Assembly: GCF_963853765.1 (NCBI RefSeq)
Contig: NC_088862.1
Coordinates: 21,638,001 to 21,702,000, forward strand
Length of the DNA: 64,000 nt
From: Magallana gigas
Lineage: Eukaryota
Direction: 5' to 3'
The notes under the pieces are model-generated. The model made no database searches and was not told where the DNA came from. It worked only from the letters and a program-made list of their open reading frames with translations. Both the position numbers and the translations under genes were made by a program. Shown here in pieces: positions 6,885 through 55,643 of this stretch (its first letter is position 1; every line of letters begins with the position of its first letter).

Positions 6885-8724
6885 TTACTTTTTCTGAAAG
6901 ACAATGCTCTCTTGTATAGTTTCAGAATCTTTATCTCCGACCTGCACAACGCGAAAACCATGCTCTTCAATTTTCTGTTTTCGGCGTTCGTAACCCCAGC
7001 CAACACCTAGCCCTTCATTAGGACCCATGCTACTCACAGGAAGACACACGAAGAGACTGAAGGGTAAAAAGAACTGCGCGGTTGCATCGTTGACTACCTT
7101 GTTGTGATACGAAGACACCGCCGGATCGTAAGCGGCCGCAAACCCATCAGGTTTAAGCACCCTTTTGATCTCTTCTAATATTTCGTCAACTTCGTAGGAA
7201 TCATGCAGAACGTCGTTGATTATCACGAAATCAAATTTGTCCGCCCACTCCTCTGGAAGTTGTCCTCCTCTCATACACAGATATTCGATGTTGCTTGGTG
7301 CTTCTTTGGAAAGTTCCTTCTTGGCGTTATCTATTGAGGACTGGTCCATGTCAATGGCGGTTATTTTAGAACATGGATATAGCTTTGCTACTTCTCTCGA
7401 ATGCTTCCCAAACCCATATCCAATGTCAAGTATCATAAACTCGTTTCCTGTTGATGAATATAGAAATAATAAACAATTAAAATTGCACGCTTATTTATGT
7501 ATCAAATTTTAATAAAAATATTCTTTCTATCCAAATATTATAAACATTTTAGTTAGGAGCTGTCGCCTTATTGTGACATCACACACGATTTTCTCTATTG
7601 AAAAAAATCATGTATTTTTAGATGGGTTACTTCTTCTGTGTTCTATACTTTTATCAAAATGGGTTATAAATTGAATGGATTTGTTGTTACATTGTTTCGT
7701 TTTAGAAATTATTAGGTCTGCGCAATAATACTGTTATTCTGGTGTATTGTGGTATGTGGTCAAAACATATCATATCGTAATACATTTTTTCAATATCAGT
7801 ATACCGGTTTACTAGTAATTGATCAGGCTCGGATTTTCGTTATGGGCTCAGGATTGATTCCAAAATAATAATTTGAAATAAAAATGGCTGTTCATTTGTT
7901 ATCGTTCCAAACACGAAAGGAAAGTCGGAGTTTTGAAATTGTGACTGCTCAAAGAGCTTCCTTAATTAGTCAAAATATTTTGACATGCTGATATTCCTAT
8001 TAGATAATTTAAAGAAGGTCCTGCTGCTGCAGTTGTAATTATGTCTCTCTTTAGGTTGACACAATCAGTCAAAACATTTATTTCTTAAAGTAATTGTTAA
8101 TTCATTAATTGTTGAACGTTTTGTTTTCTTCCACCGGATTTGTGGACTGTCTGAAATGGATTGTACCCAGTGTACCCAATTAATTGACTACTTGGGTCTA
8201 GTTTCACTTGTTCATTAATAATCTAATGAGTCGAGTTTTTTTTTTTATCTTCATTCAAACAGTTTACAAATTAACACTAACAATGTTTTATTCTTTTATT
8301 TTTATATAGAATTATAATGCAAATAAACTAGGTATATAAATCTATCAATTACAGTCTAACTTTGAAGAAATCAAATTTTGATTTAAAAAATATTGCAATT
8401 TATCGCAGTACAATATTTCTCCATATTTCCTGCTCTAGATATTATTTTAGCTTGTTGCCCACCGAGTTATAAATGTATAATTTTATGGATCTCGAAAATA
8501 GACATATATTTTTCAACTGAGCTTTATTTATTTGCAATGCTTTATAGTTGATTTAATATACAGGTAGCTATAAATCAATCTCTAAATGATACGTGTAAAT
8601 GATTTTGTTAACCTCGTTTTCAAGTTCATCACAGGAACAAGAAGTCGTTGATTCCAATCCTGAAGAACTTCTGGTGATCGAAACACGTTGAAACAAAGTA
8701 GATATTGTTCACTGTAACTGAATC
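6885..8724 (-). pseudogene. Methyltransferase copy A: orphan exon 3 (8724-8613) and exon 4 (7447-6885); no exons 1-2
   Basis: Exon 4 is an open 563-nt paralog (GNEFMILDIGYGFG...FQKK*). Exon 3 is 112 nt versus 111 in B, D, E, F (+1 nt near the donor). No exon 1/2 homolog was found between 8725 and copy B's stop at 9883. Confidence 0.75.
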
Positions 8725-9882
8725 CTTCAAAATGTTTAAATTAAATGACCAATAACAATTATATCATAAGAAAACTAACGAATATGTTTATATATATACG
8801 TTAAAAGGCATGTTACTCATCAATTTTCTTATAATTGAAACATATATTCAATAAATAAGAGCCATTTGCATCGTTATCGTTGAAAGAATCTCGGAATTCT
8901 CAGGTAATCGAATGTAGTTTTACAAAACGGGATTTTGTTTTACTTTTAAAGAGCAATAAAACGAGAATAAACAAAACCAAAAAGAATGCTCTTTCAATTA
9001 ACGGATAAAAATGCAAATCTACAATACAAAAACACCTTATCCACCTCAAAGGAGATGTAGGACTGAACATATATAATTTATAATTTACCTACATGAACGA
9101 ACCTTTTACTACTTGGCTCTTGGCTATTTAAACCCAACCCCAACCCCCATAAATATCCATGTATTATAAATTAAAAACGTTGGTTGCGTTGCCTCTTTGA
9201 AACATTACAAAAAGCAATTTAAAATATTCGTTCGCTCAAAATTACATCCACTGTATGACTTAAATTTACAATTTATTTTACCCCAAAAAGGGCCCAAACA
9301 CAAACTAGTCAAAACCAGTAATGATTTCGCATTGTATGTTTACTGCAGACACTATACATGTATCTGGGTAGGCTTTTGTTGCCACATAAGTATGGTTGTA
9401 ATAGAAGAATCCAGAAGTCAAGAGCATTGCTTACTAGAGGGTAATAATGTGTTTCCTACTGCTTTATGGCAGCCCATGGAACAACGTTATATCGAATTGA
9501 AATTTCCACGGTCACTAACGCCATATTATAAAAAGAAAACACATTAGTGATAATCACGTTATTATTTATTTGTTAGATGATATAGGAAATCAAAAAGTTA
9601 TCCATAAAAGTTTTATCTACAAATAAAGAATATACACACGTCTACATGAAAAATTTCATACAATTTAAAACTGTAAATGATAAAAGGAAAAAAGATAAAC
9701 TTACTAGTACCATTATTATCATAATTGCTGTACATTTAAACAGTGCACTGTCAAAGAGTACTTCTTTAAAAAACACTCCATCAAATCAAAAAATATAAAC
9801 AGTGCAATCTCAAACTACTTCTTCTAATGTGTGTGGTTTTTTAAAAAAAAAAACCCTCCATTAAATCAAAAAATATAAAGTT

Positions 9883-12800: not shown

Positions 12801-15661
12801 CTTAAACTTTTTCTCAAATGCTGACAGACTTGTCAAAAGAAACTTAAATATTCAGAAAATAAAACCAAAAGTATGGGTCTATAATGTAAATTTTGAGATA
12901 TGGCATGAAATAAGCTAAAAGGGGAAAATTGGAGCTGATTTTTTTCTTTACTTTTATGAAATATCACTTAAACATGCCAATATATGTCGATAGAAATATT
13001 GAAATATTGTTGAAATATGTTTTTTGAAACAACACGAAGATATCCCAATGCATTAACTATCTGAAAATTTGGTCTGCACGGAAAATAAGAAAGCCAAAAT
13101 GACGGTACTCTAAAACAACTGAGTTATGAAAAATGTTCATTTTCTTCTTAAAAACCTTCCGCCACAAAATATAGTCCCTTACTACACTCTCTAAATATGG
13201 AATTTTTCCATCACTATTTTATTCAATATAGTTTATTTGGCATAGTAAAAAAGGAATTTACAAGTAGAATTCATATATGACACAGAATTTCCAGACTAGA
13301 GGTGACACAAAATGGCTACCCAAAATCAGAGGATCGAACCTCTTTAAGAGTCAAGAGGACAATATAGCACAATGATATGCTCAGTCAGTTACTCTCTTCT
13401 GATTTAATTATTTGATGTTAAAACATCTTATTTTTTTAAATCATTGTTTAGCATTGATGATATTTTTTGAAACATTGTTTATCATTTAGGGTCCCTTTAT
13501 TTTATAGAAGTATTAACTCAAACAGCAGTTAAAACTAAACTGACACTACCCTTTCTCGGAAAAAAAAATAAAACAAATTTCCGCGTTTGAACTCGGTTTT
13601 AACTATCGATGGGAGTTTTATTAACATTTAAGTTAACATTTATATATATTTTTATAAATATTCGTAAGCTCCTTTTTAAATCTTACTGTATAAATGGAAT
13701 ATAAATGTAAATATTTCGAAAATAGCTTTTCTCCAAATGTTGGCCAATACCGATCATACAAGATATATAATGCTTTGTTCAAAATGGATCCCAACATATT
13801 CATTAACCTTACCCACGCTGTACTTTTAGATGAATCAGCCAATGACAGCAAGGAACACAGATCAATATTATTTTTCTCAAATTCTGACAGACTTGTCAAA
13901 AGAAACTTAAATATTCAGAAAATAAAACCAAAAGTATGGGTCTATAATGTAAATTTTGAGATATGGCATGAAATAAGCTAAAAGGGGAAAATTGGAGCTG
14001 ATTTTTTTCTTTACTTTTATGAAATATCACTTATACATGCCAATATATGTCGATAGAAATATTGAAATATTGTTGAAATATGTTTTTTGAAACAACACGA
14101 AGATATCCCAATGCATTAACTATCTGAAAATTTGGTCTGCACGGAAAATAAGAAAGCCAAAATGACGGTACTCTAAAACAACTGAGTTATGAAAAATGTT
14201 CATTTTCTTCTTAAAAACCTTCCGCCACAAAATATAGTCCCTTACTACACTCTCTAAATATGGAATTTTTCCATCACTATTTTATTCAATATAGTTTATT
14301 TGGCATAGTAAAAAAGGAATTTACAAGTAGCATTCATATATGACACAGAATTTCCAGACTAGAGGTGACACAAAATGGCTACCCAAAATCAGAGGATCGA
14401 ACCTCTTTAAGAGTCAAGAGGACAATATAGCACAATGATATGCTCAGTCAGTTACTCTCTTCTGATTTAATTATTTGATGTTAAAACATCTTATTTTTTT
14501 AAATCATTGTTTAGCATTGATGATATTTTTTGAAACATTGTTTATCATTTATGGTCCCTTTATTTTATAGAAGTATTAACTCAAACAGCAGTTAAAACTA
14601 AACTGACACTACCCTTTCTCGGAAAAAAAAATAAAACAAATTTCCGCGTTTGAACTCGGTTTTAACTATCGATGGGAGTTTTATTAACATTTAAGTTAAC
14701 ATTTATATATATTTTTATAAATATTCGTAAGCTCCTTTTTAAATCTTACTGTATAAATGGAATATAAATGTAAATATTTCGAAAATAGCTTTTCTCCAAA
14801 TGTTGGCCAATACCGATCATACAAGATATATAATGCTTTGTTCAAAATGGATCCCAACATATTCATTAACCTTACCCACGCTGTACTTTTAGATGAATCA
14901 GCCAATGACAGCAAGGAACACAGATCAATATTATTTTCCTATATCAATTTATTGATACTTTTTTGTTGTATGCGCGTTCAAGTTGAAAATAAATTTATAT
15001 CAAGATTACTATACTATACTATACCGAGGAGTTCAATCAATATCTAAACAGTTATCTGATTTCGTAAGCTTTGGATACGTTTCATAAACGATTTATATAC
15101 ACTTAATTATTACACGACATAGTACGTAACTTATAGGGTAAAATTTGCCTCTAAAAAAGCGCAAAGTTCATATTCTTTATATATGATGTTTAAATTTTCA
15201 AAGCGTTTCAGGTTATGTATACACGTGTGTCCTTGAAATGAATTGTTGGGAACACCGATCAACGAGAAATTTAACTTGGCATATAATATTACGCCATAAA
15301 AAAATCCTATTGAATTTTAAAGGTCGTCCAAACTGGGTTCTTCTAAAAATAACTTAATTGGTAAACAAATAATTCTAAAGGTACATATTACAGGTGAAGA
15401 AATGTATGATTAAAGTAAACAAAAGTTATAAACATTTCTTTCAGTTATTATCACATAAGTATATAAATTTATTTTGGTATGTCCAACTAACCTCAATTTC
15501 TTTCCAGCTTTTTGGCTCAATTCTTCTGCGGTACACGGCTGCTGAATTTCAGTAAAGGCGTCCACTATACCAGTTTTGTGACCAAACGCAAAGACTAGTG
15601 AGCTAAGTCCATCCCTTACAATCTGTTCTAAATCTCGAGCGTTCGTTGTAGAAGATGCCAT
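9883..15661 (-). CDS. Rv2258c-like class I SAM-dependent methyltransferase, copy B, 342 aa; exons 15661-15492, 12376-12189, 11122-11012, 10442-9883
   Basis: GT-AG junctions with compatible phases (2,1,1), 1029 nt open. MASSTTNARDLEQIVRDG...KKLRYTQEWLGCMVAAGIV...LDIGCGFG...IDM...FDFVIINDVLHD. Confidence 0.88.
11275..11901 (+). mobile_element. HINE/DINE-1-like non-autonomous Helentron in intron 2 of copy B
   Basis: 5' TTTTTATGCCCCC..GGGCATA, GTCT/GTCG microsatellite, ~155-160-bp internal tandem units (atatctaggtcaagtt x3), 3' GGGGTCATA..GTGTTTCACAAACA. Confidence 0.78.
12809..14937 (+). repeat. Near-identical 1063-bp tandem duplication in intron 1 of copy B
   Basis: ctgacagacttgtc starts at 12821 and at 13884; the units differ at only a few single bases; the duplicated ORFs 13633/14696 and 13694/14757 reflect it. 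Confidence 0.95.

Positions 15662-18604: not shown

Positions 18605-18606
<2 letters not shown>

Positions 18607-18670
<64 letters not shown>
18607..18670. repeat. (GA)n microsatellite
   Basis: Directly visible. Confidence 0.97.
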
Positions 18671-18674
<4 letters not shown>

Positions 18675-19276
18675 CAGTCTTTACTACACAATATGCATAA
18701 AGACACAGCAAAAGAGCCCGGCTTTCAGTACTTCAGTACTTTGATTAAGAGATGTCAGTCAATATCAAAACATCTTATCAGATGAATTGTATTATTTCTG
18801 TTCTTACATATCCAGTCAACAACCCATACGTCATACGTTTTAGCAGCTTGTTGCAATGAGAGATGAAATAGGAAGTGCATTGAAATTGATACTCGAACCC
18901 CCGCCGAATCGTCCGTGAACTTAGATCGTAACATACATGTAAGTCACATTTGATGTATCAATAGCCTTTCATTATGAAGCTATATATACACAAGTTTCAT
19001 AATAAGTCTGCTCACCCCTATAATGTCAAAATAGGACTTATGAATGTTTAAAGATTTCTCACTTAAGACACCCATCTCTTGTTTTCTGCATTCTCGACAG
19101 TCCATTATTATTTCCCATTGCATATATAGTTTCAGTGATAATATATAATTTTGAAAAAAAAGACATGGTGAGAATCCGTGACTTTTTCGAGGGGGGTACA
19201 CCGTTACCCATGCGTGGATGTAGAATTTAGAATGTAGAAAACACAGCCATGCTTGTTGTCAGTAAATAAAAAAAAA

Positions 19277-20690: not shown

Positions 20691-20842
20691 TGGCCTGGCC
20701 TGGCTTGGCCCCGTTGGCCAGGCCTGGCCTCAAAGTTGGCCTGGCCTCATGTTTGGCCTCAAAATTGGCCTGGCCCCAAATTTCTGTCTGGCCTCAAAAA
20801 TCGGCCTGGCCTCTAACTTGGCCTCTTCAAAAAATTCTGGCC
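20691..20842. repeat. Array of 16 GGCC (mostly TGGCC) motifs
   Basis: Counted directly; GC-rich island in an AT-rich background. Confidence 0.9.
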
Positions 20843-22830: not shown

Positions 22831-22993
22831 AACAAAATATATTCAATTTGATAAAAATTCTGACAATTTAAAAATAATTATAATAATAACAAAAGATTTA
22901 GAAAAACTAAAAATAAAGATTCTATTGCTTATCAATTCAAATATTGTATTCTTATTGCGGTTTACATATTTCAGCAAAGTTAGTATTTATATT

Positions 22994-25900
22994 TTACACA
23001 TTTTGGAATACAATGCCCTCTTGTATGGCATCAATATCTTTATCTCCGACCTGCACAACTCGAAAACCATGTTCTTTGATCTTCTGTTTTCGGCGTTCGT
23101 AACCCCAACCTATCCCAAGTCCTTCATTAGGACCCATGCTACTCACTGGGAGACACTGAAATAAGCTAAACGGTAAAAAATACTGCGCCGTTGCGTCGTT
23201 GATAACCTTTTTGTGATACGACGACACCGCGGGGTCGTAAGCGGCCGCAAATCCATCAGGTTTAAGCACCCTCTTGATTCCTTCCAGTATCTCATCAACT
23301 TCGTAGGAATCATGCAAAACATCGTTGATTATCACGAAATCAAATTTGTTTGCCCACTCGTCTGGAAGTTGCCCTCCTTTCAAACATATGTATTCGATGT
23401 TCTTTAGCCCACTTTTGGTGAGTTCCTTTTTGGCGTTATCGATGGAGAACTGGTCCATGTCTATTGCGGTTATTTTAGAGCATGGATATAGCTTTGCCAC
23501 TTCTCTGGAATGCTTCCCAAACCCACATCCTATGTCTAATATTGCAAATGCGTTTCCTGTGAATAGATACAGCAAATTGTTTTAACATATTATTTAAAAT
23601 GATAATGCGTCCAAAATGTATTTGAAAAAAATTCTTTTTATTTTTTTTTTAATATCACAAAAATGAAAGTTTTCTTATTAACATGACAACAAATTGCCAG
23701 ATCAATTCTTCTGCAAATGAATAATTATAATCATCTGAGTGTGAAATTCTAATGAAAGACTATAAACTCTTAACTCAACATGACAAAAACTATTTGTTTT
23801 TTGAAAAAAGTCAACAGTCAAATGACTTTAGGGATATTTCCCAACATATTTCAACCTCTTCAATTTCCCCTTTTCTTTTCAGTGCATCCGTGCTTACTTA
23901 TGATATTTTTTTTAAAAGTTTGTTTAACTTGATTACTGGACTGGTAACGTTTGTTTTACTGAAAACTTTTTCCAACCACTGCGTTTCTCAGCAAAACTAA
24001 TAAAATCACTAAATCTAGCAACAACGTTAAGAAAAAGAATAGATAACAAAGAAATATATCAGTCGGGCTTAACACTGACCATATAAGAACATTTGTCTGT
24101 CGGAGATAAGTTACCTCAGTTTAAAATTTAAAACACTGCTCTGATGTCATCCCTTAGCTCGCTCCAGCTGTCTAATACTTTACCGTTGACAAATCAGTGT
24201 TAGCTTTTTAAGATTAGTCCGTTATCAAGGGTTACAGTACTGATATTCTTCAAAATAGTACTGTCTCAGGTAAATCAACAATGAAATGTAATGGCAGTAT
24301 TTTAAGTGCAATATATGCCTCAAACACTTCTCTATAAAACAAATAACAAACAGTTCTCGGCCGAAAAGGGCATCAAACTCTCTGATATTTTTTTCACGCA
24401 GAACTATATATCCAAAACTTAACACTGAAGATACTTTGGTCAACATGAGGTCAAATTTACGAGCAGTTTGTCTTCAAAAGAAAGCCATAAAATATAATGC
24501 ACTGTACTGTGGAATTCCTAAATTTGAATCAAGCTATCAGAGCGTCATAATGCCAGGGGTATAAAAAGACACACACAAAAATCATCGGTGAAGTAAACCA
24601 GAATCGAGTTCAACATTCTGTAGACTCTTTACTAATTTCTTTTCACAATACCTATTACTGGAAGAAGAAGCCGTTGGTTCCAATCCTGTAAAGCCTCTGA
24701 TGAACGATACACGTCGATCCAATGCAGAACTGGTTCGTAATATCCATAGCCTTCACAAAATTGAGAGATAATAAGTTTTGTTTTTCAATGCACAAATGAT
24801 AATGATGATGATGATAATTAAAATCATAATAATTGTGATAATAATTATAATAATAATAAAAGTAATAATTATAATAATATATAATTAAAAAAAAAATCTT
24901 AATATCACATTGATAAATCAAAACATCTTGTTTAAAATATAATTTAAAAGATGTACAATGTACTTTTATAAGTTTTAATAACATGCGTTCTAATCTTTGT
25001 CAAAAGTAAAAGGATTGTATGATTTAACAGATATGAAATATTATAATCACATTCAACATATTCATCATTCTTCTAGAAATCTTATATAAATTCATTAATT
25101 TTGTATCAATGTTACAGAGATAAGTTTTGTCAAAATTTAATTAACAATTGATACACACAGAAAACCCAATAAAAATTAAAACAGCATATCAAGATATTAT
25201 CTTTTAGATTGATGCAATAAAAAAAATTGAGACCACCTTTGAAAAATTAGCGATTAACAGAGTCGAAAGAAAATGTTAATTATTAGTACTTGACTACTGC
25301 GCATTTCAATATATTGAAATTGTGATCCATCAACGATGAGTGCTCATAGGTATTTTGTATACCTTTTGGTCCATCGAGTTTTGTTGCTTCCTCAAGTTTT
25401 GGAATCATCTCGCTGAGAATTGGAATAGCAGCTGCATTGTGGCCCCAGATTTTAAGTTGAGTTTTGTCATGAGGAAGTGAATAATTTTCATCGTCTGTGA
25501 TTGTTACAATCCCTGCTGCAACCATACATCCTAGCCATTCTTGTGTGTATCTGTTAAAAACAGAATTTTCAATTTGCAAATATTTTCTTTAAATAGCAGC
25601 TATTACTTGTTCTTTCTTTATATCAGCGAGATTCGGTCAGGAAGACATCATAGATGTATAAAGCCTAAGAATATAATTGATTAATTCCTTTATGCTGATA
25701 ATTTTTTCATGGATGTTTAAAAAATCTTGTTTCGTAAATGCAGACACATTTTATGTAAGTATAAATGGTATTTTTTATATCTTTTTTGTACAACACAATT
25801 CTTTTTATATTTCATAATTTTTAGCAACAAAAAAGTTTTTGAAGTCGCAGATTTAAATGATTGTTACATGTCAATAATTTTTCTTGAGAAATTAATGCTT

Positions 25901-39509: not shown

Positions 39510-42500
39510 GAAAACAAATATCGGCCAAGTGATTATCAATTTTAAATAAAATGACAAATTAAATAATAAACGTTTATAGAGTGCATAAAGTTGCATACGG
39601 TATTCCGAAGTTTTAAGAAATATCGCGATTCTCGGATTTTTTTTTTATTGCTGTACATTGTTACAAACACACATAAACATTGACTTCAGTATCATCGAAA
39701 GTTGTTTCTTGTATAAAAAAGAAAAGATGAGAAACCATCATTTATGAAGCCGATTTGTATTGCTTTGCATGTTATTAATTGTAAATGTCGCACATGTAGT
39801 GTTTATACATGTATTTATCGATAAACATGAATTGATTAATAAAACGGCAATTTTATCGACTTGATATCAAACGTATAGTAACATAATGATTGCATTAACA
39901 AACCTGTTCAATTTAAGGAATTTTGAATCGATCACGTACGTAAATGATTGGAGATGAACATAATCATATAAAATGCTATAAATCCATGTTATAACTGATT
40001 TTTTATGTACGTTAGCTCAAAAAGTACACACATGTGGATTTAAACTGCACAAGAAAAAAAATATGTTGCGCTTAAATAATAAACAAGTTTTTTTCATTTG
40101 TACAGGTATATTTACTTTTATGTTGTTTCATTTTAAAATGGCACTTTACATGAAAATGTCACTAAGAATCAGATTTTTCCATGAAATCAAATGCGACATA
40201 TCAGAGTAGATCTTTATTCTGTCAAAATATTTCTCAAACTCTTCTTATCCGTTAGTTATAACTTTTTAATTCGTTAAATAATTTCAAAATTTGATCGCAA
40301 ATTCTTAAATTGTAATACATGTAGAATATGCGTGAATTTATTTTGTATGTTGGCGGTAGCACTATAATTGAGACATAGCCGCTTCTCGCGTGTTCATTCC
40401 GACTAATTTAAAAAGTGAAGAATCGTCTCCCGCGAGGGAACTTCCAAACGTATGATTTGAAATATTTGACTTGTATTGTTTCACAGTAATTACTGCATAG
40501 ATAACTGTTAGATTTGAACAGTACTGCTCTGCATCGATTCGGTAGGGCTCGATAGGTCTCAGCCTTCAACCCCTCTTATCAACAAAGAGTGTGCAGTGTA
40601 GTTTTTTGTTTGTTTGTTTTTTTACGTGATTAAATCATACATGTATTGCTCATGCAAACTAAAGTTGTATAATTTTACTCAGATTACTTTATAACTCATC
40701 ATCGGAAATCCACGACCATTGAATTTTGTGAGACGGGTCTTTGGTTTCTAACAATGATTTATTTACACTAGAATGTAAATTGTGGTGTTTAAGTTTCATA
40801 GCGGATGCAAAAGCAGCAATTTTATGACGTCTCAGCATCAACTTGTGTGCAATATTACGCGTTCAAAATGTGTAGATATTGACGTTACATGTATATATTT
40901 CATTTATCAAATGTTTATTTTTTTAATCAACATGTAATATTGGACTGAAAAAAAATATCAATCGCGGTATTAAAACAAGGCCAGACTCTAATTATTCAGA
41001 AAACACAACACAGACGCAGAAAAAATAGAAACAGAAAATTAAAAAAGTTGCGTTTACAATGCCGCAACTTTGACGTCGTTTTCTGAGCATTGTGACGTCA
41101 AAAGATAAGGGCCCTTTTCTCATGACGGCAGTCACATTACTCTTAAAGCATTATCGATTTCAATTCATTTTTCTGCATCCAATGTTAAAAAAGCTTTTTT
41201 TGAATACTTTACTCGACAAGAGTATAATTATTTTTGTCTTGGAAAAATAAACTGGCTAAATCAAAAAAATAATACTTATGATTGTATAGCCTCAAAATAT
41301 CAACAAGTGATAAGAAATATGCTTACCCTGTTTGAGGTTCATTACTGGAACAAGAAGCCGTTGGTTCCAATCCTGTAGGGCTTCTGATGAACGAAGCACG
41401 TCAAGCCATTGCAGAAAAGGTTCGTGGTATCCAAATCCTTAAAAACAATAAGATACTTTGAATTCTGCCGTTTTCAAAAGGTAAATTCCATTGCAGAAAG
41501 GTTTGTGATATCCAAATCTTTAAAAACAGTAAGATACATTGAATCACACTGAAATGATATAAAAAGCATCATAATATTTTATTGAACTCAAAACATCTTA
41601 AAACTGAAGATAATATCATTCTACTTCGCTATTTAAAAAAAAATTAAAGTGACATATTCAATGTCTTTCTTGAAACTTTTTTTTTAAATTCCCTTTTTCT
41701 TTGCCAATTTTACAGTAAAACTTTTTTCACTAAAATACCTTATAAAACTAAAAGGTCAACAAATTTAAATATAATACATCGGATCAATGACATATACAGG
41801 GTGTTTCAACAAACATGTCCCAACTTTCGATGTCTATACCTTAGCACTAACATGACATATTACTTAACAATAATACTGCATCTGACAGCGTTTATTCCGG
41901 CAAAATGTATTACAGTGCAAATGCAATGTATTATGATGTGATAACTAATATTTGATGACATCATCAAAAGTTAAGTATTCAGGTATTTGAAAATGGATAA
42001 TAAAAATTATCTCTATATTTATATTGTGAAACTGTACTTTGAAAATGGAAAAACGCCGACCCTAGTGAAAAAGGTTTTAAAAAAGAAGTACCCAGATGTG
42101 AAACATTTTTGAAGGAAACAGATTTTTTGTATTGTTACTAAATTTGAGCAGTACGGGATTAGCGGTGATGGAAGAAAAGATGCGCGTATAAGAGAGAGGA
42201 CTGTGAGATCGGATGAAAATATTGAAAAGGTGAAGACAATTATCAAGGAGACTCCAACGAAATCAGTAAGAAATGTATTTAGAGAAGTGGACTCAAATAT
42301 AAGTTCTTCATATGTTTATCGAATTTTAAAATACGATTTAAAATTCACACCAAATAAAATTTCTATAATGCAACATCTAAAAGACACGAACATTTCATCC
42401 CGGTCAAGTTTTGCAGAATGGATGTTGAGAAACATTGATTTAACTGAAGTCATATGGTTTTCTGAAGAAGCACATTTCACCCTGAATGGACATGTCAACA

Positions 42501-44831
42501 AGCAGAACATGCGTTTCTTGGAAATTCAAAACCAGACTTATGCAGAAAGACCACTTCATAGTCAGAAAGTTACAGTATGGGCAGCACTGAGTAGTGCTGG
42601 TATCATAGACCCCTTTTTCTATGAAGAGAATGGTGAAACCACAGCAATTACGTCGCAGCGTTATTTGACCATTCTAAAGACGAAATTTCTTCCTGAGCTA
42701 AGGAGAAGAGATATAGAAATGAACAACTTATGGTTTCAGCAGGATGGCGCCACCCCACACACTGCAAAAATTGTACTTGAATGGCTGGCTCAAAAGTTTC
42801 GAGAACATTTCATATCCTTACGTTCAAACATGGAATGGCCACCACATTCAGCTGATCTCGCCCCTTTAAATTTCTTTTTATGGGGTTATTTAAAGGACTG
42901 TGTTTATTCGCCACCCCCACAAGACACGAGTGCTCTAAAAATGTCTATACAAAGAGAAATCCGACGTATAATCGTAGACTCTTGTAAAAATGTTATCAGT
43001 AACTTCAGAGATAGAATAAGACTAGTGACTGAGAAACAAGGCGGACATTTGGAACACGTACTAAAATGACTTAGTTTTAAAATGCATGTGGAAAATAAAT
43101 GATTCAGCTTTATTAAAACTTTTGATTTGATAAAATTTTATGCAATTGCTCATAACATTTTTGCAAAATTTTAGTTCATACATAAAGCATAACTTTTATT
43201 CTAAAACTGTAAAGTTGTGACACGTTTGATGAAACACCCTGTAAATTCCTCAAACTGATCCCCCATTTTAAGGAGAAATAAGTTCTTAAATCAGCATAAA
43301 ATTACTTGATTATGATAGATATCATAATTGATAAGAAGTATTTAAGTTTAATAGTCCCCCCCCCCCAAATAAAAAATGCAATTTTGGATGAAAAATTACA
43401 TTTTCAAAAATTTAGTTCAGTTATCATGAACAAAAGCTCCAGGCGGATTCGAATTCATGATCTGCGGTTCAGAATCCCAGTACTTTAACCACTAAGCTAT
43501 GACGATATATAACCCAATCGAACGATATAAACAGTTTAACCAAACATTTAAATCGCCATCGTGTGACGTAGTGTCTTCAAAAGTATAAGAGTAGGTGTAG
43601 TGACGTACCTTAAAGAACAGTCTAGAAATTGTATAGAAAGAGATTGATTTAAGTAATGTGATTGTGATTCATCAACGTTGTGATAGTTGAAGTTGCTCAT
43701 AGGTATTTTGTATACCTTTTGGTCCATCGAGTGTTGTTACCTCCTCAAGTTTTGGAATCATCTCGCTTAGAATTGGAATAGCAGCTGCATTGTGGCCCCA
43801 AGTTATAAGCTGAGCTTTGTTAGAAGGAAGTGAATATTTTTCATCGTCTGTGATTGTTACTATTCCGGCAGCAACCATACAACCTATCCATTCTTGTATG
43901 TATCTGTTAAAAACAAAAATCCTATTTTAACCAATTTAACCATTGCGGAAACCTCAACGACAAGGTGAGAAAATTACTAATTTAAATAGATTAGTACATG
44001 TAAGTGCATCTTTGTTATAGTTGTGTAATTCAATGAAATGCACAAAAAGCTTCATAGATGTATGGAGTTTTTATACCGGACCTTTTACTATATTTTAGAT
44101 CTAACTCTTCTAAAAACAAAAGTTATATTTTCGTCGAATCTAGGTTATTCATTCGTTTCTAAAAATAATTTAATGGTCAAAGAAATATAGGTATCTTTTT
44201 CTACACTACAGATGGTAAAAAGTATACATTTTTGTTACTAAATTAGTTTAAAAAATATCAAATTATATTCGTGTCCAAAATTAGTCAGATAATGTCAAAT
44301 CAAACCGCGTTGTTTTACATTGATAAGGATAAAGGATAGATTAAATTACTTTTAAAGTTTTATCATTAATTATGTTATTTTTTTATGTTTTGAATAGTTC
44401 GTGTACTTTTACAAGTTTTATATTTGTATTGAGAATCAGGTAGTCAGATAATGATAAATTTAACCCCGTTTTTTATGTTTTGAATAGTTAGTGTACTTTT
44501 AAAGTTTTATCGAATGATAGAATAGCGGAAAAAGATTCGAAGTGACAATAAGTGCCGCACCTGAAGATTGCATATGATTTGATAAGTGATATGACCAAAA
44601 TATGCATTACTTGATTATATTTTGCACGCAATTGCTTTTCATATATTATTATTATTTTACTGACCTCAATTTTTTCCTCGCCTTTTGGCTCAATTCTTCC
44701 GCAGTACAAGGCTGCTGAAGTTTGGTAAAGGCCTCCACTATACCAGTTTTGTAACCAAACGCAAAGACCAGGGTACTAAGTCCATCCCTAACAATCTGCT
44801 CCAAGTCCCGAGCATTGGTTAAAGATTCCAT
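36792..44831 (-). CDS. Rv2258c-like methyltransferase copy E, 342 aa; exons 44831-44665, 43903-43716, 41437-41327, 37354-36792
   Basis: GT-AG junctions, 1029 nt open (MESLTNARD...); introns 2 and 3 expanded by transposons; intron 3 spans an assembly gap. Confidence 0.8.
37388..37529. other. Assembly gap (142 N)
   Basis: Directly visible. Confidence 1.
37530..37683. mobile_element. One end of a Tc1/mariner-pogo-type MITE, truncated by the gap and followed by (TA)n
   Basis: Repeated ttcg(t/c)tatatccg motifs ending ...acgagttttac|atata; the reverse complement GTAAAACTCG is a typical MITE terminus. Confidence 0.55.
37775..41134. mobile_element. 3.36-kb non-autonomous TIR DNA transposon, superfamily unassigned
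   Basis: Perfect 26-bp TIR TGACTGCCGTCATGAGAAAAGGGCCC at both ends; flanks give a CAT (3-bp) or ACATT (5-bp) TSD; no transposase ORF seen inside. Confidence 0.85.
41797..43241 (+). mobile_element. Full-length Tc1/mariner element, DD41D (rosa/Visitor) type, 1445 bp
   Basis: 31-bp TIRs CAGGGTGTTTCA(A/T)CAAAC(A/G)TGTC(C/A)CAACTTT with 3 mismatches and TA TSD; absent at the paralogous site in D and F. Confidence 0.92.
41993..43069 (+). pseudogene. Inactivated DD41D transposase (358 codons, one internal stop)
   Basis: ATG at 41993 is in frame with ORF 42203..43069; TGA at 42110-42112; motifs WFSEEAHF, QQDGATPH and WPPHSADLAPLNFFLWG with 41 residues between D and N. Confidence 0.88.
43272..43609 (-). 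mobile_element. TTAA-flanked 338-bp insertion with an internal tRNA-like segment (43436-43505, minus strand)
   Basis: TTAA at 43268-43271 and 43610-43613, GG...CC ends, TAGCTTAGTGG and GAATTCGAATCC boxes; absent from the D and F introns. TIR is very short or decayed. Confidence 0.65.
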
Positions 44832-47324: not shown

Positions 47325-50261
47325 ATGATCAAACCGAACGTCATGTTTGTGATTTTCATGGCTTTGGGCAGTAGTCTTATTCAAGGTATAGATATACTGT
47401 ATGATCCTTTGTATCGATATAATTTTGTATCGAGCGAAAACCAATGTAAAGTCGTTCAATACTTAAGATTCATATGTATTTATTTCGATAAAATTATTCC
47501 ATTCGTTCACTCAGTTCGCTTACTATATCAATGTTCATTCTTTTCATAAAACAACGTCACAAAATACATGTAGCGAAGGTGAATTAGTGGCGATCATCAT
47601 TAAAGCTCAGTATATAAAAACTCAAGCATGTTAACCGCAGATTTTACGTTCAAATTAGACTGACCCTTTTGTTTATATTCATTTTTTATCGAATTAAGTT
47701 TGAGAGAATCATATTTTTGTTTTTATTGCCCATTTGTTTGGCTACATGTATTTGACTTTTGTCATCTTTCTATCTCTCACTATCAAATCTATTTTCGTAG
47801 ACTTGAAAAAATTCTTTCAAAATTAAGTGAGACCTCTTAAGGAGGCCAAATGGTCAACAAATATTTATTATTCGATCTGAGAATTATTTCCAGCTATGAT
47901 TTGTTTAGCTATATAATTGACTTCTTCCAAAAAAGAGCAATACGGTCTTAAAATGACCATTACCATAAAGGTCTCTCAGAAAGAAGTATCAATTGATGAG
48001 GTTAAGCTGTCTGCTAAATTAAAACAAACATATACAACAAACGGTTTCTCGATATTTTAGCAATATTTCGACTATATAGAACGTTTAGATTACCGTCGCA
48101 TGAATCAATAATAAATCATGTGTAGGATAACCTACATTGTCATAAATATCCATTTTTATAAATTAAGACATTTTGAAAATAAACTACAAAATGTTGCACC
48201 AGTGTAACTACTTACACCTTTGGTAATTCAATACAGGTGAGATGATGTCCGTAAGCTTTCTTTGAATTTTAACTGATAAGTAGTTATTGTGAACTACATC
48301 AAAAGCATACTTTTATTTTCGATAAAAAAGCCCGAAATAGCAAAACATGGTAACCAACAACGCGAATGGACTAATTAACGCCATGGCGAAAAGTGTAGGA
48401 CGAGTTTATTATGCATAGCCGGGAGATACCTTTGATCGGGCATCTGTGGTTAATACAAAAAAGTTAATAAATAAAATAATTGAATTGAAAGCGATTTTAG
48501 TTATGATTGGAACATTTTTCAGACCGGGGTGGCCCAGGAACGCGGATTGACTATAATTAACGTTATGGTGGAAAGTTTAGGGCAAGTTAATCATCGGTAG
48601 TAAACCTGAGACATTAATTTGTAAACAATGAACATATTTGTGATGAATTAAACGGGGAAGTTGAATAACCGGGGAAGATGTTAACGTAATGTGACCTTCA
48701 AAACAAAATTTAGAGATACGACGCACTAAATACCTACTCACTGGTTTGAAATAAAACGATTTTATTTCAATCCTGCAACAAAAGGAATTAATTTTAAGGA
48801 CACTTACATATATATGAAATAAATTCTACCCCGGTCCGCTCATCTAGTATCAAGCCAGGCAGTAATTTTTTTTTAAAAATTTTAAATAAGCAATTAAGAA
48901 AAAAATCGGAGTCAGTATTCACATCAGTGATCCAAAATTATGGTTCAACATGTTAACATTGTATCATTTTTATGTTTAAAGTTTTTATATTCGAGCTTGC
49001 GCGGGATATCATTTAGTTGATAAGAAATTCTTTGTTTTGTTTTTTAAAAAAAAGTTGGACTTTTGAAGACATGTTTATTCCGCAAAATGAGTCCATATTT
49101 CAAATCATTTTTTCAGTGTTCTAATATTTGAAATGAAAAGGCTGTTATTATAGGAAGAGAATCTCGATAACTTGATTTGATCTCACCATTGAATGATTTG
49201 AATTTCTGTCTGGAAAACTGGTTTTAAAATCTAAATAGTTTAACTTTCACAACTAGGTTCCACTACCGCTTGCAGTTACCCGTTCGTAACCCTTGACGAC
49301 AATTGTTATTACTTCAGCACAGCTACTGCGTCATGGGATGATGCTTATGTAAGTACTCAATACAGTTCAAACGCACTTTCAGACAGCATAAAACACATTT
49401 CAAAAGTATAAAATCTGTCATTTTTCTTTATCCATTTAAAATATATTTATAACGTTTACCTGCATCTTGTCATATTTGTAAATAGGGTTTGTAAAATAAT
49501 TTTTGCACATTTATGTACACGTTTTGATTAGTATCAAGTATATTTATATACTAGTACAATATACACGATGTAGTTTTGTTTTTTAAACCAGATTGAGTGT
49601 TTACAAAGAGGGGCCTATTTGGCAAACCTAGAGACCTTTGATGAATATATGATTCTCCGTTCCAGGCTTGCTTCTCTCCGTAATGGTAGGTTTACACAAT
49701 TACTTCTTTGTTTCATGCATTATTTTATGTGATAAGAAAGTGTATTTTTGATTTGTAGTTTTGAGAGACAAATAATGTATAAAATGTTAAGAGTTTGCCG
49801 GAATGTACGGTGGTTGAAGAAAAGCATACTTTGTTTTCTCTCGATGAAACTGATTTTTTGTAATTTGGTAGAAGATAACGATTGAAACATATACTGAGAT
49901 TACTTTATTGGTAGCCTTTAGAATAAAGCAATAAGAATAATATCTGGTAAAATAGATTGGTACTTGTTTCATCATTATATAATAATTGTGTTCAATGTAT
50001 TATCAATTGACGAAATGTATGATCCTAGGCCAGAACTACGCGATCGGAGGACGTAACATCAATCGTGAAGTCAATGATGGAGACTGGAGATGGGTCAAAA
50101 ATGGGTCTTTGACGAAAATGTCTTATTTTGCATTTGGACCAAGACAACCAACTGGATCAAAAGCCTCTCCCGAAAATTGCATGTGGGTCTATTCTGAATT
50201 CAAATATGAGTTCATTGATATGATCTGCAGTAATGTTGCGAGATATATTTGTGAAAAATAA
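47325..50261 (+). CDS. Secreted single-domain C-type lectin (perlucin-like), 159 aa; exons 47325-47385, 49257-49348, 49592-49685, 50029-50261
   Basis: Hydrophobic signal exon MIKPNVMFVIFMALGSSLIQG, then C..CYYFS....SWDDAYIEC...GAYLANLET...WRW...QPTG...ENC...C....YICEK*; GT-AG junctions, 480 nt in frame. Confidence 0.85.
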
Positions 50262-53006
50262 TGACTTTGATTATATGGTTGCTCAGATATACAGTGGCTA
50301 TCAGCCGTTAAATATTTTTGATCATAAACTGGGATTAAGTCACAATGGTATTTAGTGCATGACTATTTACAGAGATATATAGGGAAATTTTTACTGCGAT
50401 AAAAAGATGCATAATATATGTTAAAATACACGATCAAAAATCTTGGTTGATTTATAATAAATGTAAGACTGGTATATGCCTTTATTTGACTTTTTTATAT
50501 TTTACATTAAAGAACTTAATTTACACAATCATGAAGTATGATAAATCATGTTTTTATCCTTTGAACAATTTTCTCAAGCTCGCCGACATTTGGACTTCGT
50601 ATCGAAGAAACATTTATTATTTATTATGTGATACATTTTTTGACAATTTTAGTACTTAGATATTAGGTCGTATATTGACTTGTTCACAATGCAATTTTAA
50701 TTCAAAATAACAAATATACTGAACGATATGTCATTAACATATACATGTAGCAAATTTCCTATTCCTCAGTGGAATACAATGCAATATAATGGGTTGTTTT
50801 AAAAATGTAAACCTTTCATGTTGTACATATGCTTACATGTACGTATGCTGATGTTTACCACTGCTTGCTTGTAAAATTTACTACAGTACATCTTCATTTC
50901 TATATTTAATTAAAAGGTAAGAAAATATAAACTGATTTATCATGTGGAATATGACTCAAAATGTATATACATTGTACGTTGAAATTGTAATAAAGTGAGT
51001 CAATTGATTCGTTTTTAAAAATCATTGAACGTTTCTTAACAGGTTACAGATATCATTCTTAATTATTGATTTTGTAAAATAAAGCGTGAACCCCCCCCCC
51101 CCCCCCACAAAAATACCTTAATATCTTTGAATATAAGATAAGTGCAGAAATTTTACAATTTGTTTTTTGGTGGGGGTGGGGGGGGGGGGGGGCGGGGATT
51201 CGGGCTCACGGAAACTACACCGACAGTAACTGTTTCTTACATTAATATTAAGCTTGCAATCGTCTGAGGTTTAGACAAGTATTCCTTTCAAAGGAATTAA
51301 TTATTATCGACATGCAATATCATTGGTCAGCTATACTTTGATATGTAATAATAGATATTATAATAATAATAATATAACTATAAATAAAGCGGAGGCATTA
51401 CACTACATGTAATAAAGAGGAAATTAGGACATATCGCACCGTTTTGCTGTTTTTCGAAACAACAAGGAATGAATAAACTGTACTCTTTTAGTAGGAGAAG
51501 TGTACTTCTGATTTAGATTTGCATGTTAAAAAACGTAATCATTGTAACTATTATGTAAGTGTATCACTGTTTTAATCTCAATCAAACGCATTAGATAATG
51601 TTTTATTAATCTACATGTAATTAAAGATTTACATGAAGCTGTCTAGTGTATAGTGAACATAGTAGTGCGAGGCGCAAGTGAAATTTGGCGAATGCCTCCT
51701 ATGGACACAAAAAATCAACGTGATTCCATCATGATCATCTCTAAAGAAAATAAATCACTTGGTAAATAAATTCTGTAATCGAACCCAATTACATATGTGT
51801 GTATACTGTTCTATCGTGCGTTAATTCTTTCCTATCGTGGGTTAATCCTATCCTATCGTGGGTTAATCCTATCAGTTCTATCGTTCAATTTTAACAGTTT
51901 ATCCGTTTGATATATATTTATATTTAGTTTAAACAAGAGTTCTATTTTAATTGAACGCGCTATATATTTTCCGTGTGAGATTTATTCTCGTTCTGAAATG
52001 TTCTCGACTATCGGCTACGAGGTGCATTAAAGAAAACAGTGTTAATAAATCATACGCGTAATGTGTATATCCGTTAATATCTATTTCATTTGTTTGTTAT
52101 ACAATTCGTTTTAAATTAATAGATCATTTGAATATACAAAAAAATATTTACGATGTATTTCATATTTATTTAGAACAAGAGTTGTATTTTCATTGAGACC
52201 GCTATGATTAAATCTTTGGGATGATCGGCTAGGGTGTACGGTAATTAAACTGGTCGTTTGTATTTAGATGCTTTCAACAATGCAGCGATGATTAAAATGT
52301 TCATAACAAGAAATTGTACGTAAATCTTGATTTGTTTTTGTTCATTCTCAAATTCTACTATTATCAAAATAATCTCATTTAACGCGACACTATTTTATCA
52401 TGAACATTGTTTATCCTTTCCTATTATGTATGAACTCTGCGTGCGTGCAAACTGTTCTATCGTGCATTAATTCTACATGTAACCCATCGTGTGTAAATCT
52501 TATTCTATCGTTCATCTTGTTAAAAAAAGTTGCGTGTAATGTACAAAAACCGTGCATTATTTCATAAGACTTGGTTTAATTGATACACATTTCATAGCAT
52601 GTAGATGTCAAAGATGAAGGGTACCCATGGTGTATTTTATATCTCCAGTGCTCGCAACTTTCACTCCCATATGAATCACAAGGGTGAAGATTTTATTGTT
52701 TTAAGTACAACCCTATAGATACCTTCGTATGTTTATTCCAACTAAAAGTGATCAGCTAAGTTGAGCTAAACAGCTAAACTATGGTAAAAAAAATATTGAT
52801 TTAAATTATGTAGTGTCTACAGTAAAGCCAAACCTAAGTTCACCGGACCAATTTTATTGACTGTGAATTTCTGAAGCAATACAAAAAGATTAAGAGAAAC
52901 TAGAGTTATTAATTCAGTAGTCTATCAATTTAATCATTGCACTCTCAAACTCCTTGCAGCTTACATATTGAAACAAAGCTACTTAAACCGGAAAACATAT
53001 TGAATT

Positions 53007-55643
53007 TTACATTTTCTGGAATACAATGCCCTCTTGTATTGTCTCAATATCTTTATCTCCGACCTGTACAACTCGAAAACCATGTTCTTCGATCTTCTGT
53101 TTTCGGCGTTCGTAACCCCAACCAATGCCAAGTCCTTCACTAGGACCCATGCTACTCACTGGGAGACATGAAAATAAGCTAAAGGGCAAATAATACTGCG
53201 CCGTTGCGTCGTTGATAACCTTTTTGTGATACGAAGACACCGCCGGATCGTAAGCGGCCGCAAATCCATCAGGTTTAAGAACCCTTTTGATTCCTTTCAG
53301 TATTTCGTCAACTTCGTAGGAATCATGCAGAACATCGTTGATTATGACGAAATCAAATTTGTTTGCCCACTCCTCTGGAAGTTGCCCTCCTTTCATACAT
53401 AGGTATTCTATGTTCTGTAGCCCACTTTTGGTGAGTTCCCTTTTGGCGTTATCAATAGAGAACTGGTTCATGTCAATGGCGGTTATTTTAGATCGCGGAT
53501 ACACCTTTGCTACTTCTCTGGAATGCTTTCCAAACCCACATCCTATGTCAAGTATCATAAACTCGTCTCCTGTTGATAATCATAGCAATAGAGCAAGATT
53601 TAAAAAAGATAGATTATAAAATAATTATTTATTTACAAAATTTGAAAAGTTTCCTTTTACATGATGCCTTTCAAGCGTGTTGGTTATGTTAAAAAAAATT
53701 AAGTACGTTACTCTACAAGATAACAAGTATTGTGATTTTTTGAAAAAAATCAACTGGCTTATACAAAATTATTAAAATTATACAGACGCAAATATCCACA
53801 AGTGATGAAAAATATGCTTACCCTGTTTCAGGTTCATTGCTGGAACAAGAAGCCGTTGGTTCCAATCCTGTAAGGCTTCTGATGAACGAAACACATCAAC
53901 CCATTGCAGAAAAGGTTCGTGATATCCAAATCCTTAACAATAATAAGATACATTGAATTCTACTGTTTTTATAAGGTCAATGCCATTGCAGAAAAGGTTT
54001 GTAATATTCAAATCCTTAAAAACAATAAGATAAATTGATTTGGTCATTTGTAAAATGTCAATGCCATTTCAGAAAAGGTTTGTGTTTACCAAATCCTTAT
54101 ATTCAATAAGATACATTGAATTCTGTCGGCTTTAACTAACAATGAAGAAAAAGGAAAAAAGAAAACACTATAATATTTTATTGAACGCAAAACATCTCAA
54201 AACTAAAGATAATAACATCCTATTTAGTCCTTTTTTAAAGTACAAGAATCTAATCAATAAAAAGTGGCATGTTCAATGTCCTACTTGGCATTTTTACATA
54301 GATTCTTTTCCTTTATATTTATTTTGCTACCTTTTCAATAAAAATTCATACACAATAATACCACAGAAAACTAATACGTTAACAAATTCAGATGTCATTC
54401 ATCGGATCAGTGACATGAGAATCCACTAAATAACCACCTCCTCCTTGAAGAAATTAGAAAATACAAAAGGTCGATAGAAGGAAATTGGTTATAGCATTAT
54501 AAGTGTGATCCGGCAAGTTGTGTTAGTTATAGTTGCTCATAGATATTTTGAATACCTTTTGGTCCATCGAGTCCTGTTGCTTCCTCAAGTTTTGGTATCA
54601 TTTCGCTTAGAATCGGAATAGCAGCTGCAGTGTGGCCCCAGATTTTCAGCTGAGCTTCGTCATGAGGAAGTGTATATTTGTCATCGTCTGTGATTGTTAC
54701 TATTCCGGCAGCAACCATACAACCCAGCCATTCTTGTATGTATCTGTTAAAAGCAAAAATCCTATTTTATCCATTTTAACCATTGCTGAAACCCCAAAGA
54801 CAAGGCGAAAAAAGATTAGTACATGTAAGTACATCTTTGTTATAGTTGTATTTAACAGTGACATACATAAACAATCTACATTGATATATTAATTTTTTTT
54901 ATACCCGACCTTTTAGATCAATTTCTTCTCAATGCTAAATGTTCGTTAAATCTAGGTTATGAATTTGTTTCTAAAAATAGCTTTTGAGGTTTAGAAATAT
55001 AGGTATCTTTTTCTACACTACAGATGGTAAAAAGGGCATACTTTTACTACTAAATAGTTCGGAAAGTATAAAAGATATTAATTTATATCCGTGTTTAGAA
55101 TCAGTCAGATAATGTCAAAAAACGAAGAAAAAAAATGTCAAGCCCCTTTTTTATATCTTGATAAGGTTAAGGACAAGTTAGTGTACATTAAAGTTTAAAA
55201 GATGAAATAGCGAAAATAGTTATCTATTTGTGTAGAGAAACAGGCAGTCAGAGAATGCCAAATGTAGCCTATTTTTTTTATATTTTGAATAGTATCTATA
55301 CTTTTACAGTTTTATCGAAATTCAATGATAAGATAGCAGGAAAAATTGTCGTTATTTTAAGTACATGTACTGTTCCTAAAAACTGCATATGATTTGATAG
55401 ACGTTATGACCCAAATATGCATTAGTTGATAAAATTTTGCACGGATTAACTTTTTATTTGTTATCGGTTTACTGACCTCAATTTTTTCCCTGCCTTTTGG
55501 CTCAATTCCTCGGCAGTGCAAGGCTGTTTAAGTTTAGTAAAGGCGTCCACTATACCAGTTCTGTAACCAAACGCAAAGACCAGGGTACTAAGTCCATCCC
55601 TTACAATCTGCTCCAAGTCCCGAGCGTTGGTTGAAGATGTCAT
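53007..55643 (-). CDS. Rv2258c-like methyltransferase copy F, 342 aa; exons 55643-55477, 54743-54556, 53932-53822, 53569-53007
   Basis: GT-AG junctions, 1029 nt open. Confidence 0.88.

Follow-up and report, generated by a model that had tools for sequence, protein, structure and literature searches.

A tandem array of RIPS-1/Rv2258c-type methyltransferase genes in the oyster Magallana gigas, most likely a stress-responsive battery for small-molecule methylation

What is a row of methyltransferase genes with a bacterial family name doing in the genome of an oyster, how did it come to be there, and what might its products methylate? These questions are raised by a 64,000-nucleotide (nt) stretch of Magallana gigas DNA (the window, below), on contig C10, where the array lies at 21.64-21.70 Mb. 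A first-pass annotation, made from the letters of the stretch alone, had described five intact genes, a partial cassette and a relic, and had likened their products to Rv2258c of Mycobacterium tuberculosis. The family to which Rv2258c and the Caenorhabditis elegans protein RIPS-1 belong is widespread in bacteria and patchy in invertebrates, and no member has a known substrate. The array is made up of tandem methyltransferases of this RIPS-1/Rv2258c type and, by analogy with RIPS-1, is most likely (with a probability of about 0.6) a stress-responsive battery of enzymes that methylate small molecules.

The window is AT-rich animal DNA with a GC content of 0.28-0.37, and its six-frame list of open reading frames (ORFs) contains six near-identical minus-strand ORFs of 183-193 amino acids (aa). 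When exon-sized pieces found by tblastn are collected, first, middle and last exons fall into five complete sets plus one orphan last exon; together with manual splice mapping, this gives five intact genes on the minus strand, A to E, each with four coding exons (Table 1). A three-exon model was rejected, since a conserved block in the supposed intron 2 is a fourth coding exon. The spliced models contain no internal stop, and all introns are GT-AG. Introns fall at homologous codons in every copy, in phases 2/1/1: intron 1 (phase 2) precedes the RY of a RY-x-x-EWL motif, intron 2 (phase 1) comes after DGPKG, and intron 3 (phase 1) lies nine codons ahead of ILDIGCG. The earlier count of genes and fragments was right, as were the array end points, 6885 and 55643, the former marking the stop of truncated copy F and the latter gene A's ATG. 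Its statement that intron positions and phases are identical holds for the codons and the phases, but not for the exon-3 donor of gene D. This donor, the only canonical in-frame one (window 24640-24660), is 12 nt upstream of that of the other copies, because the ancestral donor would now create a stop.

The five products are 78-91% identical to each other and 65-69% identical to that of a sixth gene, for the array continues past the window. This gene, LOC105341124 (XP_019928073.2), is intact, encodes 343 aa in four exons and lies 14-16 kb below the window start (C10:21619500-21627500, local 1950-4081); at exon 4 it is 72-73% identical to gene A. Genome-wide there are at least 16 matches to exon 4, six of them in the window. 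A second cluster is present on contig C9 at 28.81-28.85 Mb, and two distant copies are found on C9 at 21.92 and 21.99 Mb.

The array genes are already annotated in RefSeq under the family name; at NCBI the proteins are called [quoted passage not shown]. The product of gene A is XP_034309524.2 (LOC117683787; 100% identity, with the RefSeq start 15 codons further upstream), that of gene B is XP_034309525.2 (LOC117683788), and that of gene E is XP_065929807.1. Gene D corresponds to XP_065928802.1 except for four residues (GIVK) at the exon 3/4 junction; these extra residues cannot be derived with canonical splice sites in this assembly. The proteins nearest to the product of gene C are NP_001292254.1 (LOC105326445), at 98.0%, which rests on a 2007 cDNA (BAF63640), and A0A8W8MAQ2, at 98.5%. 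A literature search by family name, loci and protein accessions found no paper on these oyster proteins.

Gene A is transcribed and spliced as modelled. The RNA check used three contig sets from different studies together with raw poly-A reads, and was made for gene A only. The joint 54743/55477 is present in three RNA contig runs, 53569/53822 is supported by two contig runs as well as by six raw reads that begin at five different points, and 53932/54556 is present in one run, two more runs having loose ends that extend into an exon 2 variant. Raw poly-A reads are confined to the four exons and to a single strand, and the RNA-run word share of about 0.4 equals the exonic share of the stretch compared. 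A further joint, 53912/54609, is seen in three RNA runs; it skips 696 nt, has GT..AG on the plus strand, antisense to gene A, and links the interiors of exons 3 and 2, with a shorter side of just 28 nt. It may represent an antisense transcript or an artefact of short contigs. The splice joints seen in RNA and the match of the models to RefSeq proteins bear out the first-pass annotation in its view that these are genuine eukaryotic genes rather than contamination.

Genes A to E are all under purifying selection. In pairwise comparisons, the ratio of nonsynonymous to synonymous divergence (dN/dS) is 0.16-0.32, with a synonymous divergence (dS) of 0.16-0.78, and from these values the five are old, selected paralogs, neither haplotypes nor recent assembly duplicates. 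It might be argued that the copies are artefacts of assembly, either haplotypes placed next to each other or a repeat that was collapsed, since there is a gap in copy B and an inversion beside copy C, and since the annotation of an older assembly has two genes that are 99.1% and 99.4% identical to E. Such an origin is highly improbable, however. The pairwise dS values are far above allelic levels; intron lengths and insertions (Tc1/mariner and others) vary from copy to copy; and Crassostrea angulata has a separate ortholog for each of A, D and E. The earlier judgement that collapsed haplotypes were unlikely, given divergent introns, is in line with a dS that reaches 0.78.

The proteins A to E belong to the Rv2258c family by Pfam, by sequence search of the PDB and by structure modelling. 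Pfam PF21320, the Rv2258c-like winged helix, is divided by intron 1 and scores 31.1 bits in its exon-2 part, where the cut-off is 24.1, and 16.4 bits in its exon-1 part; the same domain is precomputed on identical or near-identical RefSeq proteins. Exon 4 matches Methyltransf_31 (E 8.1e-23, 81.1 bits), Methyltransf_25 (E 1.3e-18) and Methyltransf_11, and motif I, ILDIGCGFG, is present in all five. A HMMER search with exon 4 against 1.84 billion representatives returned a 343-aa relative at 73% identity and only six matches below 1e-30. This relative, the neighbouring paralog that is 65-69% identical to A-E, aligns through residues 17-342 with residues 39-369 of Rv2258c (PDB 5f8c, E 8e-22). A structure model of the gene D protein (predicted local distance difference test, pLDDT, 95.6; predicted template modelling score, pTM, 0.90) finds 5f8e_A in Foldseek with E 2.9e-25 and a template modelling (TM) score of 0.85/0.83. 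These matches confirm the architecture that had been recognised from the winged-helix motif and the Rossmann fold behind it.

Rv2258c (5f8c, 5f8e, 5f8f) and the oyster proteins have the same domain order and length, superpose at TM 0.83-0.85 over about 350 columns and have in common the motifs RYVxEW, DGPxG, GCGxG, HD, CLP/CM and GLGxxWG. They are, however, just 22-24% identical, and the oyster genes are interrupted by three introns and arranged in arrays. Nor does the match yield a function, as the substrate of Rv2258c is also unknown. Among 70 family members the invariant or near-invariant positions are RY-x-x-EW, DGPxG, GCGxG, the Asp that ends strand beta2 and the His-Asp after beta4, as well as the Ser and Cys of SLFxCLP and GLGxxWG. 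In the fold ranking of the gene D model, Rv2258c (0.83-0.85) is followed by TnmJ of the tiancimycin cluster (8g5s) at 0.75. The winged-helix part of TnmJ also matches by sequence (E 2.3e-10), but TnmJ is a bacterial enzyme of secondary metabolism with about 20% identity. Next come the family-2 O/N/C-methyltransferases (ASMT, DnrK, DsyB, RedM, PhzM; PF00891), at 0.58-0.71. These have a dimerisation domain, a role predicted for the N-terminal part of the oyster proteins too, followed, as in the latter, by a Rossmann domain, and in many of them the His after strand beta4 is the general base. Membership in the family-2 O-methyltransferases (PF00891/PF08100) was considered and rejected: the N-terminal domain is PF21320, TM is 0.58-0.71 compared with 0.85 for Rv2258c, and PF00891 on oyster exon 4 is a secondary match of 34.1 bits, compared with 81.1 for Methyltransf_31.

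What, then, is the winged helix for? A two-copy model scores 0.80 as a homodimer, and the best of three controls reaches 0.02; agreement of contacts from run to run is 92% or more, and the partner pLDDT is at least 85. The mark used for a dimer is reached by 21 of 30 solved one-chain pairs (7 of 16 for animals) and by none of 23 solved single chains. Because relatives have been solved as dimers, the model may be reproducing known structures. In the modelled interface, residues 6-115, which include RY-x-x-EW (residues 57-65), face residues 270-306 of the partner, and from this the winged helix looks like a domain for dimerisation and for capping the active site rather than a DNA reader. The fold of the N-terminal domain, a winged helix-turn-helix, could instead suggest that it binds DNA and that the proteins are regulators or methyltransferases of macromolecules. 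This is very unlikely, since the modelled domain forms the dimer interface as it does in small-molecule methyltransferases of this fold, and all fold neighbours are enzymes acting on small molecules.

The question of origin was addressed with a maximum-likelihood tree of 50 rows, which is unrooted and in which the animals sampled are bilaterians (molluscs, nematodes and echinoderms). Relatives occur in other oysters, mussels, scallop, pearl oyster, Solemya, a periwinkle (Littorina), sea urchins, crinoids, a brittle star and many nematodes; prokaryote homologs come from Acidobacteriota, Planctomycetota, Pseudomonadota, Actinomycetota, Chloroflexota, Cyanobacteriota, Bacillota and Nitrososphaerota. 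The prokaryotes form a clade (99/95, starred in the tree) that includes three unlabelled metagenome proteins, with all animals outside it. Protein P0047, considered as a bacterial homolog, was left unlabelled, as its gene-poor surroundings look eukaryotic. Nematodes form one clade (100/100), and a branch supported at 91/71 has all molluscs to one side of it, their order being roughly that of the species tree. Molluscs are grouped with nematodes at 81/74, and the placement of echinoderms is unresolved.

Within the molluscs, the five window genes form one clade (99/95) in a group made up of Crassostrea alone, with the Saccostrea and Ostrea copies outside it. This clade arose by tandem duplication within the Crassostrea/Magallana lineage, with losses. 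The C. angulata one-to-one partners of A, D and E are 96-99.5% identical to them, and so the duplications that gave rise to these three predate the split of that species. Birth-and-death evolution, as put forward in the first-pass annotation, fits the coexistence of intact, truncated and relic copies, as well as the dS and dN/dS ranges and the support for the window clade. The gene plan is older still. With the window genes the two distant C9 paralogs have an identity of about 35% and yet have four exons cut at the same places, and their lineage groups with a Mytilus protein (100/98); the intron plan that they have in common with the window genes therefore predates the oyster-mussel split.

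The array thus looks inherited, and recent bacterial transfer or contamination is excluded. In favour of a recent acquisition by oysters there is just the family name, taken from a Mycobacterium protein, and the results refute it in several ways. Each gene has three spliceosomal introns, and spliced poly-A transcripts exist; gene GC, at 30-36%, is like that of the flanks; orthologs are found in other oysters, mussels, scallop and snail in a species-tree-like order; and the nearest prokaryote proteins are just 26-31% identical to a Mytilus query. The earlier label "bacterial-type" and the suggestion of a horizontal origin are, in that form, not supported for a family present in molluscs, echinoderms and nematodes, with animals outside the prokaryote clade and paralogs at about 35% identity that share the four-exon plan. 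A much older event, in which animals received the gene from bacteria ahead of the bilaterian radiation, with vertical inheritance from then on, is unlikely but deserves more weight. It would account for the patchy occurrence of the family in molluscs, echinoderms, nematodes and many prokaryotes, and for its reported absence from vertebrates, insects, flatworms and plants (PMC9548181). However, the separation of animals and prokaryotes in an unrooted tree fits vertical descent with losses equally well, and deep bivalve paralogs have introns in common. One relative differs in form: KAL5016420.1 of Solemya velum is a 679-aa protein in which two complete copies of the enzyme are fused. Solemya is a protobranch bivalve that hosts sulfur-oxidising symbionts.

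For what the enzymes might do, RIPS-1 is the guide, as it is the only genetically studied animal member of the family that was found. In C. elegans, loss of RIPS-1 (R08E5.3) results in resistance to dithiothreitol (DTT) and beta-mercaptoethanol; the gene is induced by the same two thiols as well as by H2S and through HIF-1, and RIPS-1 paralogs are among the genes with the strongest H2S induction (PMC9548181, PMC9090326). The worm enzyme decides the lethality of thiol reductants and is wired to the hypoxia and sulfide response. The authors of these studies pointed out homologs in bacteria and marine invertebrates (PMC9548181, PMC9090326); neither Crassostrea, Mytilus nor Rv2258c comes up in the supplements of the RIPS-1 paper. 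Nematode and oyster members have their Pfam pair in common. Over 347 residues, the product of gene D is 28% identical (E 3e-38) to a Caenorhabditis protein colinear with RIPS-1, with a one-residue offset, through which the loss-of-function sites of RIPS-1 were mapped. Five of these six sites (Y134, L180, G183, S200, S308 and A322) are conserved in the oyster, where they correspond to Y123, L163, G166, S183 and S287 of the gene D RefSeq protein, and the A322 position is variable. As in the oyster, the worm lineage has several paralogs (including R08E5.1 and R08F11.4), some of them adjacent; R08E5.1 adjoins rips-1 (supplement primer note, PMC9548181). The first-pass annotation, which did not mention RIPS-1, had named best matches to a characterised eukaryotic family with a vertical phylogeny and a known substrate as counting against it. 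This is partly the case: a eukaryotic family with a vertical-looking phylogeny is indeed there, in the form of RIPS-1, but its substrate is not known.

In this reading, the enzymes of the array are cytosolic proteins of about 340 aa, in which an N-terminal winged helix, the predicted dimer interface, is followed by a class I S-adenosylmethionine (SAM) methyltransferase domain. Each is predicted to be a homodimer that binds SAM through motif I (ILDIGCGFG). The methyl group would pass from SAM to a small nucleophile, which the family-invariant His-Asp after strand beta4 (VLHD) may deprotonate, with the invariant Cys (SLFxCLP) and the GLGxGWG loop as the predicted lining of the pocket. By analogy with the worm, low-molecular-weight thiols or sulfide are the first candidate acceptors, and the paralogs would differ in acceptor range or in regulation. 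Human METTL7B/TMT1B, for which methylation of H2S and thiols is described (PMC7921093, as cited in PMC9090326), may be an analogue in function only; it was not among the matches of the searches made here, none of which was aimed at METTL7B, and the resemblance seen goes no further than the general class I fold.

Several points weigh against this proposal. The substrate of RIPS-1 is unknown, and thiol methylation is just the hypothesis of its authors (PMC9548181, PMC9090326). Induction by HIF-1, H2S, DTT and beta-mercaptoethanol, together with the SAM-drain phenotype, is known for worm RIPS-1 only, and orthology to RIPS-1 is not established, because the mollusc-nematode grouping is weak (81/74). 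The acceptor atom is open, because the structural neighbours methylate O, N or C of secondary metabolites. The hypoxia-response core motif, RCGTG, is not enriched in the window (88 occurrences, 82.6 expected). Among the genes themselves, read evidence is limited to gene A, gene B has lost two conserved residues next to the active site, and an inversion separates gene C from its upstream region. A scan of the window places one RCGTG 180-450 nt upstream of each ATG, which, being unenriched, was not used as evidence. For B, D and E this is a single RCGTG at 180-430 nt; 447 nt upstream of the gene A ATG the palindrome CACGTG is present (56090-56095), and it occurs again at the corresponding position of the inverted copy at gene C (35085-35090).

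The neighbours in the fold ranking also allow a different function, in which the enzymes are biosynthetic and methylate an endogenous osmolyte, pigment, signalling amine or phenolic, with the paralogs divided by tissue or by step. After Rv2258c and TnmJ, all fold neighbours are biosynthetic (ASMT, DnrK, DsyB, RedM, PigF, PhzM), every copy is under purifying selection, and three copies have been kept one-to-one in C. angulata. Although this is a real possibility, we regard it as rather unlikely: those neighbours reach just TM 0.58-0.71, tandem arrays with turnover, such as that seen here in a truncated copy and a relic, are more typical of families that face the environment, and the only studied animal member is stress-induced (PMC9548181).

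The stress-responsive battery can be spelled out further, though the longer version is doubtful. Here the oyster set would have expanded from a RIPS-1-type enzyme, would methylate sulfide and small thiols and would respond to hypoxia or sulfide as its drivers; the range of acceptors would differ among its paralogs, for example in copy B with its ND to KG change beside the active site, and they might form heterodimers, and copy F might provide an alternative catalytic module for its neighbour. Oysters live with tidal hypoxia and sediment sulfide. A thiol/sulfide battery, if true, would provide the first biochemical function for the orphan RIPS-1/Rv2258c family. As a genomic observation the array is unsurprising, since lineage-specific tandem expansions are common in oysters and the genes were already annotated: it is an ordinary lineage-specific expansion of a known, biochemically orphan family, and its interest lies in the RIPS-1 link and in the natural variants. 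The locus offers six intact, moderately diverged variants in an animal whose ecology exposes it to hypoxia and sulfide, and thus a handy set in which to screen substrates and to study the diversification of a small-molecule methyltransferase by tandem duplication.

Table 1. Coordinates of the array genes and associated features, numbered from the first letter of the window
Feature	Position	Strand	Description
Gene A	55643-53007	-	342 aa; exons 55643-55477, 54743-54556, 53932-53822, 53569-53007
Gene B	44831-36792	-	342 aa; exons 44831-44665, 43903-43716, 41437-41327, 37354-36792
Gene C	32675-30051	-	342 aa; exons 32675-32509, 31786-31599, 30977-30867, 30613-30051
Gene D	27200-22994	-	339 aa; exons 27200-27031, 25550-25363, 24750-24652, 23556-22994
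Gene E	15661-9883	-	342 aa; exons 15661-15492, 12376-12189, 11122-11012, 10442-9883
Truncated copy F	6888-8728	-	partial exon 3 (~8728-8618) and complete open exon 4 (7448-6888)
Exon-4 relic	~27590-27700	-	last ~70 nt of exon 4 and 3' flank, with a 5-nt deletion
Assembly gap (N run)	37388-37529		within gene B intron 3, 33 nt upstream of the exon-4 acceptor
Tc1/mariner-type transposase ORF	42203-43069	+	288 aa, antisense in intron 2 of gene B
Inverted 2.8-kb segment	32683-35491		directly upstream of gene C; self-blastn

Gene B differs from the other copies both in its introns and next to its active site. Its introns are long, with a Tc1/mariner ORF and an insertion of about 3.8 kb. The transposase ORF matches the catalytic domain of Sleeping Beauty in the PDB (E 7e-8), and also SETMAR; a Pfam scan of it gave no match. 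The sole gap of the window leaves the coding sequence untouched and, as it lies in intron 3, no reading frame crosses it. By self-blastn, intron-3 homology between B and A extends to the edge of the gap, and the approximately 3.8 kb absent from A lie on the far side. In XP_034309525.1, a RefSeq model that is older and independent, an N-terminal part of B type (98.1%) is followed by an exon 4 of B type (97.3%), which favours the continuity of gene B across the gap, short of proof. The two residues lost by gene B are at the end of strand beta4 (VIIKGVLHD, exon 4, 37120-37130), beside the invariant His-Asp, where it has Lys-Gly (ND to KG) and the other copies and most of the family have Asn/Phe-Asp. 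Since C. angulata LOC128162846 shares the Lys-Gly, the change is old and probably tolerated or adaptive.

At gene C, homology to gene A ends 7 nt before the ATG of C, and the next 2.8 kb are inverted. This segment is composite: 34281-35491 is an inverted copy (92.6%) of the gene A upstream region, 55687-56885, and 32679-34277 is an inverted copy (86.6%) of 27726-29290. Despite the inversion, the cDNA-based RefSeq protein is 98% identical to the product of gene C. Just upstream of exon 3, an 81/82-bp unit is repeated in tandem, in 2.7-3 copies, in gene A (53901-54123) and gene C (30941-31184), and apparently also in gene B (about 41400-41544). As the unit includes the exon-3 acceptor along with ~30 nt from the start of that exon, it creates decoy acceptors, the use of which would add a stop codon.

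Copy F retains the 3' two-thirds of exon 3, the donor of which is out of phase with its exon 4. In exon 4, which still matches Methyltransf_31 (E 1.4e-18), the Cys of motif I is replaced by Tyr. Private changes in this exon comprise 10 synonymous and 4 non-synonymous ones, and its pairwise dN/dS to the other copies is 0.10-0.13. In a hand calculation that assumes about three non-synonymous sites per synonymous one, the binomial probability of the 10:4 split is about 3e-4, and from this skew exon 4 of F was constrained for most of its separate history. The phase of the F exon 4 acceptor fits the exon-3 donor of gene E, which lies 3.5 kb upstream, and by phase F exon 4 may be an alternative last exon of gene E. 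No retrieved protein joins exons 1-3 of gene E to F exon 4, the retrieved proteins being at most 88% identical to the latter.

The exon-4 relic lies about 400 nt upstream of gene D and was recognised by tblastn (E 0.02) and by DNA alignment. Pieces of coding sequence that resemble C-type lectins are found between and beyond the methyltransferase genes on the opposite strand, at 49986-50261 (+) and 60161-60496 (+); the former matches Lectin_C in Pfam (E 1.4e-4) and the latter, although similar-looking, gave no match. Gene E has a tandem duplication of 1.07 kb in its intron 1 (12808-14940), with 99.5% identity between the two copies, an arrangement that reflects either a very recent event or a stutter of the assembly.

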